DNA from: Botryllus schlosseri
Taxonomy: Eukaryota
Direction of reading: 5' to 3'
Assembly: GCA_051294905.1 (NCBI GenBank)
Contig: CM119383.1
Span: 7,874,001-7,938,000 of the forward strand
Length of the DNA stretch: 64,000 bases
Numbering within the stretch: position 1 is the stretch's first letter; the number at the start of each line of letters is the position of its first letter. The notes beneath the pieces were generated by a model, which did no database searches, had not been told where the DNA came from, and saw nothing but the letters and a program-made list of their open reading frames with translations. The translations under genes and the position numbers were made by a program. Below are positions 21,009 through 28,700 of the stretch, in pieces.

Positions 21009-21800
21009 ATGCTACTCTCATCAGACGGAAATGAGGAACTGCTAGCTACAAAAATTGATTCAGTCGTGAGAACAATAAAAGATGTTTATATCCATCTACC
21101 TTGGATTGGCCCCATTTCCACCCGTTTTGAAAAACAATTGATTTCTGCTGTCGGTAAATGTTACGATACAGTCAAAACCAATGTGATTTTTACAACAACA
21201 CAACTGCTCCCTTCAACACGCAAAGACGTGCTTCCTGCACTTCAACAAAGTAATGTAGTGTACGAATATAGGTGCCACTGTGATTGTGGCTACGTGGGAA
21301 GAACGTCAAGACGTCTGCAGGACCGCATAAACCAACATGTCCCCAGATTTATCAGAACACGTGCGTCACGCGATGTGAAAAGCTCACCCTTAACTCATCC
21401 ACTCAAGATTGATGCTGATCGATCAAAAGCCATTAATTCTGCCATCGGCAAACATCTGTTGGATAATCCGATTTGTGCGAATAATTATCGAGACGACCGA
21501 TTTCGAGTCGTAGGTCGAGGCCGTTCACAATTCCATTTGTGTGCCTTGGAATCAACTTTTATCAAAATACACCAACCAAAACTCTGTCAACAAAAGGAGT
21601 TCGTGTATCACCTAAAAATAGTACATTGAACGCTCTCTCATTCGAAATTTCATGCTGGTGACGTCATATTTTGTGATACGATTGTTGATAGACAATGTTC
21701 TTTCCAATTCTCTACTAGTTGCTGACGATTACCCCTGACGAGTGTCAGCCGAAAATATTCGGGTTCATTTCAATATGAATATACTATTTAATTGTATATT
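21009..21800 (+). mobile_element. Penelope-like retroelement 3' remnant: GIY-YIG endonuclease ORF (21009-21629) plus 3' UTR/pLTR
   Basis: IHLPWIGPIS..., SNVVYEYRCHCDCGYVGRTSRRLQDRINQH, SAIGKHL, LESTFIKIHQPKLCQQ match the PLE C-terminal GIY-YIG with its Cys-x-Cys/His motif. The RT domain is absent. Confidence 0.9.
21731..21764 (+). ncRNA. Minimal type-I hammerhead ribozyme motif (PLE-associated)
   Basis: ACCC-CUGACGA-G(UGUCAGC)C-GAAA-AUAU-UC-GGGU. Helix I is ACCC/GGGU, the core CUGANGA and GAAA are intact, loop III is the palindrome AUAU, and UC is the cleavage site. Helix II is reduced to one G-C pair. Confidence 0.6.
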
Positions 21801-22457
21801 GAAGTTCTGTACCTCCAAGAAGCTCTTCGTGAGAATGTGGTAACCAGGATTTACTTTTGTCGTTTACCTGAACTTTACCATCGAAATTATCAAAATGTCA
21901 GTCGGGTAGATCCACCCGCTGAATACCTATCACCAAGCAAATCACGTCATTTGGCCACGGACGCTGCACACCGAGTTCATTGGCCATTGTCACGTTCACC
22001 AGCGGCAGCTTCTGCCTCACTACATGCAAATATCTGGCTATATTTTCGTATTCGGCACTTTTGAATTACGAAGTCGTTTGAGTTTATAATGTCGGATGGA
22101 TCTTTGACGTCACGTCTCACGTCATTGCTCAAAATTGTCACACCTCGAATTCTCAACCAATATCCAATTTTCTGCAGTTAATGTTTATGGCTGAGAGACG
22201 ATCCGTTGATTATGACTCATGGAAACTAAAGATTTTTGGAGAAGGGAACAGTCATTTCAAATTGAAGTTTCACTCATATATTCGTGAATCTTTCCAAACA
22301 CCAATCAAACTATTGATTACTAAACCACGGTATGGGATTGATTTCAATCACGATTTCAAGCCAGTTTCGTGTTTATAACTGAAACAAACGGAACACTTCT
22401 TCCCACTGAACGATGTAATATATAATACTATTATTACTGCAATGAGAATATTTTTAT

Positions 22458-23717
22458 TCAAGGATGGGACAATTTATCTATCGCTTCATCATATTCGGCA
22501 GCTACTCTCTTCAAGGATTGATCCAAATGTTCATTCAACTTATTCAACATGTCTGTATGGCCACCAGGACTTGACAACTTCTCCAGATGCGATTCGTAAG
22601 TTTTGAAACTGCTGAGAAACTGCTTCAGGTTAACATCATGTTGGTTTTCCTTCAAATTCCTCCAAGATTGCATTAGTCCCGCGATGGGATTGCAAATGCC
22701 GTCAACAGCGCTTTCTTTCCATGCTTGATAATCAGTCCATACGTTGTGTGAAAACTGCAGCATGAACTGTAACTGGATCCGTTGCACAGCCTTGTTGTAT
22801 TCCAATTGCCTCCGCAACAGATTGATGTTGTCATTCTGACATTGAGTTACATGATCATGGGCGCGAATCATCTCCGTTATCTTTGAACGGATCACAGAGT
22901 TTTTTTGCAACGAAGATGGCAATGATTTTATGATTTTGTCGAACTTCAATGCTCCAAAATCATCTGCTATTCTCACCTTGGACCAAGGAGCAGATGGCTG
23001 TAAAAGGGACAAGGCAACTAGTTCGTCTGAGCAATGTTCCAATGCAGTGACACATTTCTCAGATTCTTCACCGAATTTTTTAACCCACGGACTGCATAAA
23101 TATTTGCTGATATCAGCATTATTTATATCAGTGTTGAATCCGTGCGACTGCATTAGCAGGTTCAACGATATCAATTGCTTGCGCAATTGCGAAAGTTCTT
23201 GTTCCAGGTAGGAAAGATACTTGGTGTTCAAATTTTCTGGTCTCATTTTGAAGAGATCCATACAGTCTAAAGGTGCATGAGATTTTAGAAATTTAGTGCC
23301 GCTCATGAGAGATGGTAAGCGCAGATTATCGGATGATTCCAGTTGAGATTGCTTGAACAAAGAATTTTTCATTTTTCGTAGACTACCCAAGTATGCCATG
23401 AGTTGTGATCTTTTGACAGACACGTCGGGACCAGGCTTCTTTTCGGCGATTAAAGACTGAAATATTGTTATTATCTGTTGTAATTGGCTTTCAATCTCTG
23501 TCAAAACGGAGGCTCGGTTTGATTGAGCTTGTGATAGCAACATGCATTGTCTTTCCAACTGATAATTTTGCGCTTTCAGCATGAACGATCTTCTCTGATC
23601 AGGATTTTCCATACCCGCTTCGCTGTTCAAGTTTTGAAATAAGTCCCTCAAAGTTTGCAATTCTTCCTCTAGAAACTTATTCTTTTCCACCAGTTCTTGC
23701 AATGTGGTTTCAGCCAT
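22458..23717 (-). CDS. Intronless 419-aa predicted coiled-coil protein of unknown function
   Basis: Long uninterrupted ORF with a good ATG context (atcATGG) and heptad-like Leu/Gln/Glu pattern (LKAQNYQLERQCMLLSQ). The stop TGA overlaps AATAAA (minus strand 22458-22453). Confidence 0.85.
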   Translation of the reverse strand: MAETTLQELVEKNKFLEEELQTLRDLFQNLNSEAGMENPDQRRSFMLKAQNYQLERQCMLLSQAQSNRASVLTEIESQLQQIITIFQSLIAEKKPGPDVSVKRSQLMAYLGSLRKMKNSLFKQSQLESSDNLRLPSLMSGTKFLKSHAPLDCMDLFKMRPENLNTKYLSYLEQELSQLRKQLISLNLLMQSHGFNTDINNADISKYLCSPWVKKFGEESEKCVTALEHCSDELVALSLLQPSAPWSKVRIADDFGALKFDKIIKSLPSSLQKNSVIRSKITEMIRAHDHVTQCQNDNINLLRRQLEYNKAVQRIQLQFMLQFSHNVWTDYQAWKESAVDGICNPIAGLMQSWRNLKENQHDVNLKQFLSSFKTYESHLEKLSSPGGHTDMLNKLNEHLDQSLKRVAAEYDEAIDKLSHP

Positions 23718-23726
23718 GATGTACAG

Positions 23727-25304
23727 CTATATAGTCCACTTTAAACACCTAGTCTCCTTGTGTGTGTTGAGACACTTCACACTGCAGTATCGTGCACCAC
23801 ATGAAATGCAGGTGTAATTTGATAACAGGCCGCAAACTGCACAGAAGCGGCGAATTGGAAATCTGAAGAAAAGTTTATTTTTCTTATTGATGCCACCACA
23901 TTTAAACTATTCTTGCATACTTAGACTGGGGAGCTACCGCACCAAAGTAATTTGGTTTTGTTTTATCCTTATCTTGCAAGCGAATTCTTTCTTCATCCAG
24001 TAAAGCCGAGAAGTTTTTTCGATATATTTGTTTTTGAAATTCGCCTCTTGTCTTCTTCTTTTTCTTTGTTACCTGTTTGAGAAAAAAGGAATACTTACAT
24101 ACCGTAGAATGTGCTATTAGTGAAATCACAATCACTTCAGATTTCAAAATTTGTATAATTTATATGAATAATTGTTATATACCGTACCGTTTCGCTATCC
24201 TCTATTTCATCATCTGAGGCAATACCAAACTTTGGTCGTTTCCTTTTGGAATCGGAGTATGCGGAGTGTGGATCTTCCTGTAATAATACGTATCACTGAT
24301 TATGTACTCGGAAATCACAGAAAGCATCAAGTTCGTTGCCATTGTAGTTGTACATCACACACTGGAACTGTAGAGTTTACTCTAAAACAGTGGTTCCAAA
24401 CCTTGAATTGAAACATAAAAATAGGCCTACTTATAACCAACATTTCAAAGCATGTAGCCATTGCAGCCTGCCTTAGGATCTCACCATCCGGCTAATTCAA
24501 AAGCATGCATATCAACTTCTATAGATTCCATATCGGTTATTTTACCGTTGATAGACACGAATTGGCAAATGCTAATACTCATTGAAACAAACGACTAGAG
24601 CGTATATATGCGATAAATATTCAGACATATAAGTTTGCAGGGGGGGATATACATTCATTTGTATGGGCATGTGCTCTTCAGTTTACAGAAATATTATATA
24701 AAGGTCTAAGACCAGTATAAATCAAGATATATTCGTCATGTGACATATATTTGTCATATACGGTAGCATGCTCGATGCTGCCCCTACTGGAATCTCGGTT
24801 CGTTTTGCCTGATATATCAGGTGAGCAGCGATGATTCTCCAAGTTGAAGTAATTTAATAAGAAATAATATAAAAATGAAACGTAGTGTGAGCACAGGACA
24901 CCGATTCCATACAGGGATGCTGCCAGCTCAGCTGGCCCAGCTGGAACTCTATTCCCGGTTTTCAGATGCGGCATTTGCTTGTAGAAAAATTGACGTGAAC
25001 TATAATATAGAAACAAACATCAACTGTCTATGACCATACACGGTATTCTTGCAGGATTTTCAGTGGTAAATGAGAGCCGTAAAACGGCTAGTTTGGAGCA
25101 GCACTGGTCGGGGTCGTAAAGGAAAACGTAATTTCGTAAACGTGAATTTCTCAGTTGAGTTACCTGGAAGTTATCTTTTTCCAGTGATTCTAACTGCCTG
25201 TTAAGGCGACGTATTCGTGTGGCACTATCTAATATCCGACGTGATCCGCCTTCTTGTAGCCTTGACGATTCTCGGCGAGTAACTCCCTCCACACCAGGCG
25301 CCAT
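23727..25304 (-). CDS. ZNHIT1: Zinc finger HIT domain protein 1 (Vps71/Swc6; SRCAP/SWR1 subunit), 172 aa
   Basis: Exons 25304-25164, 24277-24188, 24072-23921, 23862-23727 (519 nt). RRILD...RRLNRQLESLEKDNFQEDPH, KKKKKTRGE...RKNFSALLDEE, zf-HIT RRFCAVCGLLSNYTCISCGARYCSVKCLNTHKETRCLKWTI*. Confidence 0.97.
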
Positions 25305-25703
25305 CTGTATCAACAAACAAAATTGCCGCCGCAATGCCCATCCAACTCACTTTCCATATGCATAACATGTCGTCATTCAAGCGGTTCTTCCTAGTCAGTG
25401 GTTGGGGAATATTCTATTTACAAGAACCATAACTCATGTAATCATCAGTACAACAGTTCTGATAAATTTGCATAAATCTAATACTACGGCATTGCGCAAA
25501 GAAAGACAAAAGTAGACGATTTAAAACCATGCACATACTCGTAGTATTACAAAATACGATCGTCACGCGCCAATTACTTATGCAAGATCTCACGTCCATC
25601 GTCAACACGGAGATTCAAGCGAAGTTCTGTCAACGACTACGAGACGACGTTATAGGTTTAGTGTGGGGATTGCATTACGCGTTTAGCCTAACTGGGTGTA
25701 AAA
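25305..25703. promoter_or_regulatory. Putative bidirectional promoter shared by ZNHIT1 and GNPTAB
   Basis: The two ATGs are head-to-head and only 399 bp apart. No specific elements were identified. Confidence 0.6.
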
Positions 25704-28700
25704 ATGAGGAAGAGCATTTTCTTCAAGTTGTTGCAGAGGCATACGTATACCTGCTTGTCACACCAATATGGAATATATTTCGCTTTTGCTGGGATAGTCG
25801 TTGTTTTGTATTCGATGTTCCAGTTTGGGGAGGTGAGTCACTTGAATTATATACAATGCATTTCGTAGAACCGGTGTCAATATTACGGAGCTAAATGAAT
25901 GCATCGCTAGATTTATGTAAGTATTATATAGTATTGAGTTGACAATATCAAATTAAAGACTATAGGCTAACTATGTTAGCCCTATGTTAGAATGTACTTT
26001 TGGCGTTTTAAAATCTCGACGTCTATTAATTGCATCTGATTGTACCAAATACACAAGTAGAAGTAGCAATTTCCCAGACCTATCAAAACTACTTTTAGTG
26101 GAAGATGGAAATTAAGCTCGAAAAACTACTATTTTTAGAGTAATTAATTTCATAAAGTAGATTTGGTGGAGGGGTCAGTGGGGTCACATAATTTTAGCAG
26201 TCAATCGACCGTAGCAACTTTTGAAATTGCTAGATGCAAAATGGGATTTATGAAATTAGAAATAGCTGCGATATCCGAAAATTAATTCCGTTACAGCGGT
26301 AGGCTCGTAGGCATATCGTGATGTAACAATTAAAAAACTTGGTAGGCCTACTTTACAAAATCCAAAGTCTTCAAAGTAAGGTATCAACTTGACTACCGAA
26401 AGTAGTCTAAAATCATAATCACTTGAGTAAGTTGGCAAAACCTACTCAAGTAGCCTACTTGGAAAAAGTATCAGTTTTACTGACCACGTAGGGGTGCTAC
26501 ATTGTATGTTACATGTAACATTACAGTAGGACTAAGGCAGTGGTTCCCAACCTTTTTTCACCCACGTACCATTTCAAGGTTTTATGCACTGCTCGCGTAC
26601 CGCCTGCACAAGCTACACGCGCCGAAGGCGGTCAAAAATGTTTCCATTGTGTTGAGCTGCTGAACGCTGCGAAACAGAAAATAAACGGGCCATTTTAAGG
26701 CGTAGTATATGATTTCTGTTGTGGATCCATCTGGAATTCTTGTGGTCAAATATATTAAAACCGAATTTGGTTGGGTAAGAATCCCAATGCATTACGACTA
26801 GATCTCTTCTCCATATCCACGACGACAGCTTAAAAAACTCAAAATCAACCCCACCCGAACTAATAATTTCCTTCGGTCCAAAAAGAATCTACTCGCATAC
26901 CACAGGTTGGGAACCACTGGACTAAAAAGTAAAGGACATTTCCTCAAAATACCGATTTTTTGAATATTTCCCAGGAGCTGCTGGAATGGAGTCAAACTCA
27001 ATATGAATCCGTATTCAGTCTCTATCACGACAACATCGCGGGACGTACGTTTCAAGCGGCGATAGGCGCCCCAATTCCAATAGACATTGTCTACACTTGG
27101 GTCAACGGATCGGACCCTGTTTTAATGAAGCAATTGAATGAGCTGAAATTTGAACTGAATGCCAATAGCGAGGAAAGTGACTCAAAATCTCCGGAGATAT
27201 TTCCGCATTGCTCTCACCCGGATTGTTTTTCGTTGCCGTGTTTTGCCATGCATCCGAGCATGCAGTACAGTTTTACGGTTGAAAACGCGAAACAGAGTAT
27301 TGAAGAGCTTTCTGAGGCCCAATGGCTGGAACATATAAAAGTTTCCAAGGGATTTGTTGGAGATACCAGATCGAATGTAACGTTGTTTCGGTGAGTAGAT
27401 GGCTATAGTGAGTACTAATTCAGAATTGTATCTGCGATATGACTAGTAAATATTGCTGATACTGCAATTTACCATAATGTAATATATTTGATAACAATAA
27501 CAAGGTTGTTACCATCGAAATACAGACCTGAAACAATTGTCAAATCTTGATGTTTGACATTAAATTGCGGCCAGTAAGTGTTTATTATTGGACTTTTCCT
27601 TGTCCATGCACCTATTATTTTACTTTAATTTTAACATATTTCTCCTAGATTTAGGCCTACATCTAATAGAATTTTGTGTGGTGCATTTCTCTCTCTCCTT
27701 CTTCGGATTCTCCGATAACCATATAGAATCCTACCAAACTACTGCATTTTCACTCATTCATTCCTCTATCCCAGGTTTCAAGATAAAGAAAAGGTTTCAG
27801 AAGCGATAAAGTCTATGAGACAAAGACAAGACAATCATACCTTAATACCCACTTTCATAACGACAGCAAATTATGTTCGAAAGTCGTCGGCGCTGAAGAA
27901 AGCAATCGTTTTGAAAGGGATTCCTGACAAATTAGACTCGGACGATTTGAAAGAGAAGCTACCTGATAATATTAAATCTGCAACCGAATGGATTTATGTG
28001 GCTCCTGGCCAAAATCTTGCTCTCGTGTGGACCAGCGGTCAGTACTCAGTTGATTTATAGATAATTTGTAGATCAAATATTTTTATTCAGTCGTGTTTAC
28101 AAGTAATTGACACAAAATTTGGTGCACATAGGATGTAAATACTATATTATCGCAGTATTCTGAATGTATGAGGTTCATGGGTCAACACAGGATTTACAGC
28201 ATGTATAATTTGTTTAGATTCTGGACTGGTCGATAAGATTCTTGATCCTAAGGACAACACCACACTTTCATTTTTTGGAATTGGATCGAATATGGTGAAT
28301 GTGTTACCAGCTCGTATTGTGGTGAATCTGCCAGAGGAAGATCACGGAGATTTGGCCAGGAGTCGATTTGAAGATAATGAAGAATTGAGGTGTGTGTCAA
28401 ATTTTAATAGCACAGGTTTACACCGAGTTGCCAAGCGATTATTTTGAAGTGTGATATTAGGCCTATGTCGTTGCAGTTCTAAAGCTGGGTAGGCCTGTGT
28501 CTCCAAATATTCCGCAATATTTGTATCAACAAAATTAACAGATAGACCCAACAGCTATTTTAGATATGGTTTTCATTACTGCACAATAGAAAATGCAGGA
28601 AGTCATCATCACTTGGCATGTTGATCATGCTACACTACAAGCTATGATGTCTAGCACAGTGGTTCTCAACCTTTTTGTCTTCGCGGACCCCTTTCGGAAC

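Follow-up and report, generated by a model that had tools for sequence, protein, structure and literature searches.

We analyzed a stretch of 64,000 nucleotides (nt) of Botryllus schlosseri DNA (assembly GCA_051294905.1, contig CM119383.1, positions 7,874,001 to 7,938,000), here called the window, in which the minus strand carries the gene for ZNHIT1 followed at very short distance by a second open reading frame (ORF) that we call gene X. ZNHIT1 is a zf-HIT protein of the SRCAP/SWR1-type complex and has a role in H2A.Z deposition. At the junction of the two ORFs the minus strand reads ...AAG TGG ACT ATA TAG ctgtacatc ATG GCT GAA. The ZNHIT1 stop codon TAG occupies 23729-23727 and the gene X start codon 23717-23715, 9 nt further on and in the same frame. 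An earlier interpretation made from the letters alone (the sequence-only reading) had described this arrangement, and the sequence it gave was exact. The features of the locus are listed below with their window positions and, in brackets, the evidence used.

25164..25324, minus strand: ZNHIT1 exon 1 (tblastn with the ZNHIT1 of relatives and spliced translation; 5' end from reads of RNA run X24).
24188..24277, minus strand: ZNHIT1 exon 2 (tblastn, spliced translation; RNA joint).
23921..24072, minus strand: ZNHIT1 exon 3, which opens with a lysine-rich A-tract (tblastn, spliced translation, RNA joint).
23727..23862, minus strand: ZNHIT1 exon 4, with the zf-HIT domain, the end ...CLKWTI and the TAG stop at 23729-23727 (Pfam, tblastn, spliced translation).
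23718..23726, minus strand: the spacer ctgtacatc, 9 nt; the sole nearby AG is that of the TAG stop (sequence).
22458..23717, minus strand: gene X, an intronless ORF of 419 codons for a protein predicted to be an all-helical coiled coil (ORF, alignment, AlphaFold2).
22453..22458, minus strand: AATAAA overlapping the gene X stop, with the shared poly(A) site a few tens of nt downstream (motif and reads of run X20).

Joining the four exons gives a ZNHIT1 of 172 amino acids (aa), which aligns end to end with the ZNHIT1 of relatives and has the C-terminus CLKWTI found in all of them. Its start codon lies at 25304-25302, with 25304-25164 as the coding part of exon 1, and the exon upstream of gene X matches the zf-HIT family (PF04438, E 1.5e-10). 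Two of the three introns are backed by RNA joints. That between exons 2 and 3 (24069/24072 to 24185/24188) is present in reads of X22, a bulk RNA run, and in an X1 contig, and that between exons 3 and 4 (23862 to 23921) in X1 contig 7.

The junction itself is reliable. Two small RNA-like assemblies from an independent 2015 study contain all sampled junction words, and the bulk RNA reads hold no variant at 23715-23729 (depth around 12, threshold 5%), so that an assembly slip can be dismissed. Together with the C-terminus shared with relatives, this agrees with the view of the sequence-only reading that the stop is unlikely to be an error. One AATAAA overlaps the gene X stop (22458), and a second was found at 23879, inside ZNHIT1 intron 3; these are the only two sites on the minus strand between 22300 and 24100, an interval in which that strand has no ATTAAA.

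RNA reads of the window species were sampled at 3-6% of each run, giving depths of about 10, and the samples differ between runs; results on loose read ends are from those listed. From position 23661, within gene X, the X1 contig continues through the junction and covers ZNHIT1 exons 4, 3 and 2 in spliced form. In X22 the bin that holds the junction has a depth of about 12; gene X is covered at 5-12 and the ZNHIT1 exons at about 2-7. The same structure is present in relatives, where the contigs L003-L005, L006, L007/L008, L010, L011 and L013 contain the spliced ZNHIT1 ORF directly followed by the gene X ORF. Because the ZNHIT1 introns are gone, these contigs derive from RNA.

The 3' end of the transcript was located with X20, a single-cell run (one library) whose 3'-tag nature was inferred from its read pattern. 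On the expected strand, X20 depth is 64-148 at the end of gene X (22435-22815) and drops to 5 in 22308-22434. Over ZNHIT1 exons 4 and 3 it is 0-0.5. A depth of 8.6 over exon 1, at the distance expected for priming on the exon-3 A-tract, is best explained as internal priming on this run of lysine codons. Polyadenylation at the TAG would give a pile far exceeding that internal A-tract signal, and since no such pile was seen, ZNHIT1 has no 3' end of its own in X20. The ZNHIT1 poly(A) ends at the stop that the sequence-only reading proposed to look for are thus missing from the 3'-tag reads.

For the 5' end, four reads of X24 end at 25324 and continue into the reverse complement of an oligonucleotide tail, which we take to be the template-switch oligonucleotide, and then into adaptor. 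These reads indicate a conventional capped transcription start site (TSS) at about 25324, 20 nt before the ZNHIT1 ATG, rather than a spliced-leader (SL) junction. We rejected the X24 coverage, which extends over ZNHIT1 exons 1-2 only, as proof that gene X has no second 5' end. The absence is uninformative because X24 has almost no gene X reads in any form; its pattern probably arises from short complementary DNAs primed on the exon-3 A-tract, and the run yields the ZNHIT1 TSS only. Just upstream (25305-25352, minus strand), the ZNHIT1 ATG directly follows ...gatacAG, with GTGAGT about 46 nt before it, and this segment may be a mini-intron or the outron of transcripts with a more distant start. 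In 25356-25482 X24 reaches a depth of 1.5, and the four tagged reads start at about 25324.

The evidence for one transcript consists of a TSS near 25324, a single 3' end near 22430 and continuous coverage, pieced together from several runs with no single full-length molecule. At the junction no cluster of read starts or ends was reported among the listed loose ends at a depth of about 10. ZNHIT1 appears to be expressed from a bicistronic mRNA. The core idea of the sequence-only reading, one shared transcription unit with no room for a ZNHIT1 3' untranslated region (UTR) or a promoter between the ORFs, is borne out by spliced dicistronic RNA from the window species and from at least five of its relatives.

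Every ascidian locus that was read has gene X directly downstream of ZNHIT1 and in the same orientation. The ZNHIT1 stop and the distance from it to the gene X ATG are as follows.

Window: TAG, spacer ctgtacatc, 9 nt.
L001 (genomic): TAA, with a second in-frame TAG within the spacer, 15 nt.
L003-L005: TAA, 15 nt.
L006: TGA, no AG between stop and ATG, 12 nt.
L007/L008: TGA, no AG between stop and ATG, 19 nt.
L010: TAA, 8 nt.
L011: TAA, 9 nt.
L013: TAA, 28 nt.

Two ascidian assemblies that are more distant (31-33% identity) also have ZNHIT1 as the upstream neighbor, but at about 400 and about 510 nt, and in both a strong pyrimidine tract with CAG precedes the gene X ATG by 55-90 nt. These loci indicate that the linkage of ZNHIT1 and gene X is old in ascidians and that one clade has narrowed the gap to 8-28 nt. 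The two-gene unit is conserved as a pair with a short spacer.

Three further observations concern the pair in other ascidians. A gene model of Clavelina lepadiformis (P0312, 590 aa) lacks the zf-HIT exon and connects ZNHIT1 exons 1-3, by way of four extra codons and in frame, with the beginning of gene X, as seen by comparison with P0017 (455 aa). It is either an operon-type mis-fusion by the gene predictor or a real cis-spliced chimera, and the fused model implies that the two genes adjoin in Clavelina too. Sequencing run SRR3402057, the source of L008 and L010, contains two different ZNHIT1-gene X pairs, whose gene X proteins are P0005 and P0009; either two species were mixed in the sample or the animal has two pairs. 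In L007 the RNA contig extends about 900 nt past gene X into a same-strand MRP-S31 ORF (L007:1634-2545), which has a textbook pyrimidine-tract acceptor 7 nt before its ATG, unlike the acceptor-less junction between ZNHIT1 and gene X. MRP-S31 is absent from the window.

Gene X is single-copy in the 495-Mb genome of 219 contigs and must therefore be expressed from this locus. Its closest named homologue is in the ascidian Styela clava, with 40% identity. The end-to-end alignment of thirteen ascidian sequences has 48 invariant columns, includes the conserved block RRSFMLKAQ.YQLERQCMLL and indicates that gene X is under protein-level constraint. A profile built on these 13 sequences gave 282 protein matches, and the label "orphan" that the sequence-only reading had attached to the 419-aa ORF does not hold, as homologues span choanoflagellate to marsupials. 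Members of the family (P0015, P0017, P0020-P0078, P0194-P0308) were found in tunicates, with Ciona and Clavelina among those named; in a choanoflagellate, sponge, Trichoplax, corals, molluscs, annelid, brachiopod, nemertean, sea star and amphioxus; and in sharks, ray-finned fishes, coelacanth, lungfish, amphibians, reptiles and marsupials. Placental mammals and birds are not represented among the matches listed. The non-tunicate members are longer (550-780 aa), and nearly all members are annotated as uncharacterized.

Domain and structure searches gave little to compare gene X with. Neither gene X nor its family has a Pfam domain above cut-off, ESM Atlas features returned generic coiled-coil neighbors only, and a profile search of PDB gave no match. 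The AlphaFold2 model, built with 13 sequences, is all-helical with a predicted local distance difference test (pLDDT) score of 70 and a predicted template modeling (pTM) score of 0.26, and its best Foldseek match among Swiss-Prot models has an E value of 0.13. Judged by these homology searches, the family is ancient and widespread in animals, with neither a name nor a studied member.

To explain how gene X is expressed, we favor, over resolution by SL trans-splicing, a bicistronic mRNA from which gene X is translated by termination-reinitiation, with a probability of roughly 0.42. Transcription would begin at the conventional capped TSS, about 20 nt ahead of the ZNHIT1 ATG; splicing would remove the three introns of ZNHIT1, and polyadenylation would occur once, just after gene X. 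The mature mRNA would consist of ZNHIT1 (172 codons), 9 nt and gene X (419 codons). ZNHIT1 would be translated by ordinary scanning, and ribosomes finishing it would restart at the ATG 9 nt further on to make gene X. Such a bicistronic mRNA accounts for the single 3' end, the even coverage and the tiny spacer. Reinitiation would moreover explain why eight taxa keep the stop-to-start distance at 8-28 nt even as the spacer drifts in sequence, length and frame. Leaky scanning as the route to gene X is unlikely, since ZNHIT1 contains 3-5 out-of-frame ATGs. The sequence-only reading had listed a dicistronic mRNA with reinitiation among three options. It fits best, and while the dicistronic RNA was observed, reinitiation is the part that we infer.

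Several points weigh against this explanation. Reinitiation after an ORF of 172 codons is normally inefficient. No UGGGA occurs in the last 120 nt of ZNHIT1 in any taxon. Synonymous conservation shows no excess at the ZNHIT1 3' end (0.42-0.45 versus 0.41 overall), nor at the gene X 5' end. A conserved RNA structure at the junction was not found either; the consensus fold is weak (-10 kcal/mol, one compensatory pair), and single-sequence z-scores are -0.5 to -2.4. The reads are so thin, at the sampling and depths given above and from differing samples, that SL-tagged reads at 23726 could be missed, and RNA contigs cannot display short SL tips. X1 depth changes from 8.8 to 4.7 near the gene X 5' end, which also fits extra monocistronic gene X RNA. 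Finally, SL trans-splicing resolves many ascidian gene pairs (PMC1488885, PMC2760879), so the prior favors an SL operon.

Resolution by SL trans-splicing is accordingly the alternative to be weighed most carefully. Here the dicistronic RNA would be a precursor or by-product, and gene X would be translated from a trans-spliced monocistronic mRNA. The acceptor might be the AG of the TAG stop, as in Ciona. It might instead be the invariant AAG|TGG in the coding end of ZNHIT1, in which case the mRNAs of ZNHIT1 and gene X would be mutually exclusive, as in C. elegans SL1-type operons; use of this site, the only invariant AG, would destroy the ZNHIT1 message. In Ciona about 20% of genes lie in operons without intercistronic DNA. 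There the G of the acceptor AG receives the poly(A), an AATAAA is usually missing from upstream cistrons, and operons are enriched in single-exon genes (38% versus 15%) (PMC1488885, PMC2760879). The anatomy of the window fits this picture, with two same-strand genes, of which the downstream one is intronless, and no AATAAA ahead of the ZNHIT1 stop. The spacing is below 100 bp (9 nt here, 8-28 nt in seven relatives), and dicistronic RNA is documented by X1 contig 7, the X22 coverage and the contigs of relatives. An SL operon is also suggested as the ancestral state by the two distant ascidians, where the pair lies 400-510 nt apart with a strong acceptor, and the step in X1 depth near the gene X start is what SL resolution would give.

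Other results speak against it. Upstream poly(A) at the acceptor G, the hallmark of Ciona operons, was not seen, X20 depth being 0-0.5 over exons 4 and 3 as against 64-148 at the end of gene X. X22 depth is not lower upstream of the junction, where the read ends form no pile, and no loose end at 23726 is among those listed (depth about 10). All nine RNA contigs of relatives pass through the junction. The spacers of L006 and L007/L008 lack an AG, which argues against a standard Ciona-type SL operon in those two relatives. The candidate AGs have a weak pyrimidine context (0.28-0.61), most of them following a purine, although this score discriminates poorly, as one true cis acceptor scores equally low. 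A search with the Ciona leader followed by GT gave one match with one mismatch in the 495-Mb genome, where about 0.8 is expected by chance; a match at chance level is uninformative on the leader of the window species. The first option of the sequence-only reading, in which the AG of the TAG doubles as SL acceptor with poly(A) added there, thus has no support from the 3'-tag reads and is not general, given the two relatives without an AG. Overall, we consider SL resolution, the mutually exclusive variant included, a real possibility but a somewhat doubtful one.

Less well placed is a gene X 5' end of its own inside ZNHIT1, provided by a promoter in intron 3 or exon 4 or by an SL at the exon-4 acceptor, with the ZNHIT1 3' UTR overlapping gene X. 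X22 depth over exon 4 (about 12) is above that over exons 3 to 1 (about 2-7), and exon 4 is poor in ATGs, with none in five of seven taxa. However, depth estimates over such short exons are unreliable, no cluster of starts was reported among the listed read ends, no conserved non-coding block is available for a promoter, and the contigs of all relatives extend into the upstream ZNHIT1 exons. We therefore regard an internal 5' end as unlikely.

Readthrough of the stop to give a functional ZNHIT1-gene X fusion of about 595 aa was the remaining option of the sequence-only reading, and it is refuted as a conserved function: the window spacer keeps the frame and contains no further stop, in a UAG-C stop context, but three of the eight spacers (8, 19 and 28 nt) are out of frame, the in-frame spacer of L001 is interrupted by another TAG in the same frame, and taxa differ in the stop codon (TAG, TAA, TGA), with no conservation of the nucleotides after it. 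Spacer length is not kept as a multiple of three among the relatives (8, 9, 9, 12, 15, 15, 19 and 28 nt, window included), and five in frame of eight is not significant (binomial P about 0.09, with non-independent taxa), which leaves such a fusion highly improbable.

A tight pair of this kind is expected as such, since operons are well known in ascidians and other tunicates. Three features go beyond the textbook operon: the upstream gene seemingly lacks its own mRNA 3' end, many species keep the spacer at 8-28 nt, and in some species the sequence between the ORFs offers no splice acceptor. If gene X is indeed translated from the bicistronic mRNA, the locus would be a conserved cellular chordate case of restart after a long ORF. 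The fixed ascidian linkage to ZNHIT1 is also a first functional hint for the gene X family. The link of gene X to H2A.Z deposition proposed by the sequence-only reading would be one of co-expression only. A bolder proposal is that in stolidobranch-type ascidians, to which SL trans-splicing would have been open as a way to resolve the pair, gene X is made only by reinitiation after the full 172-codon ZNHIT1 ORF, an arrangement kept since both proteins act together, with gene X as a partner of ZNHIT1 and the H2A.Z-exchange machinery; this is speculative and, in our judgment, improbable.

The surroundings of the pair offered some further observations. Within ZNHIT1 intron 1, at 24721-24974, RNA depth on both strands greatly exceeds that of the flanking sequence in each of the four runs, and many of the loose ends disagree with one another; the segment has the appearance of a dispersed repeat with expression from many loci. 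A Stealth_CR1 exon of a GNPTAB-like gene (26960-27394, plus strand, E 7.5e-11) is oriented head to head with ZNHIT1 and lies about 1.6 kb from the ZNHIT1 start. The same neighbor is found in L001 and in the contig of P0003, and ZNHIT1 and the GNPTAB-like gene may have a bidirectional promoter region in common. On the strand opposite to gene X, shortly after its end, an ORF of 206 aa (21009-21629, plus strand) has no Pfam match; by eye it recalls a GIY-YIG-type nuclease of a mobile element.

Among known systems, C. elegans SL1-type operons are expected to yield a polyadenylated upstream mRNA, and none was seen here. They resemble the present pair in having no intercistronic DNA, and in them trans-splicing and upstream 3'-end formation compete (cited in PMC1488885). 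An AATAAA for the upstream gene is present in the three that are fully characterized (PMC1488885), whereas the ZNHIT1-gene X pair has no upstream AATAAA.

The fuhc-sec/fuhc-tm pair of Botryllus schlosseri, a colonial ascidian, is similar in that a capped, polyadenylated RNA joins two fully spliced genes (PMC3691228). No spliced leader was found on its downstream message. Its two genes are separated by 227 nt, the linked RNA is a rare species, and on northern blots two separate mRNAs predominate (PMC3691228). Unlike in the fuhc pair, the upstream gene ZNHIT1 shows no 3' end of its own.

Termination-reinitiation is known on the RNAs of caliciviruses, with their termination upstream ribosomal binding site (TURBS), on influenza B M1/BM2 RNA and on human LINE-1 ORF1/ORF2 RNA. 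The likeness to these RNAs is in geometry only, with two long ORFs on a capped, polyadenylated RNA and a restart codon a few to a few tens of nt from the stop. Unlike TURBS systems, the ZNHIT1-gene X junction has no UGGGA motif, conserved structure or synonymous constraint. Reinitiation by 80S ribosomes has also been induced in yeast (PMC11952965).

Ciona-type SL operons (PMC1488885, PMC2760879) share with this locus a same-strand ascidian pair with practically no intercistronic DNA, a dicistronic RNA, the lack of an upstream AATAAA, a single-exon downstream gene and conservation of the pair. The differences are that here the boundary showed no upstream poly(A) end, the spacers of two relatives offer no AG acceptor, the 8-28 nt from stop to ATG leave no space for a 3' UTR, and no leader-bearing reads were seen, although no proper search for them was made. 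In the way it is transcribed, the locus behaves like an ascidian operon.

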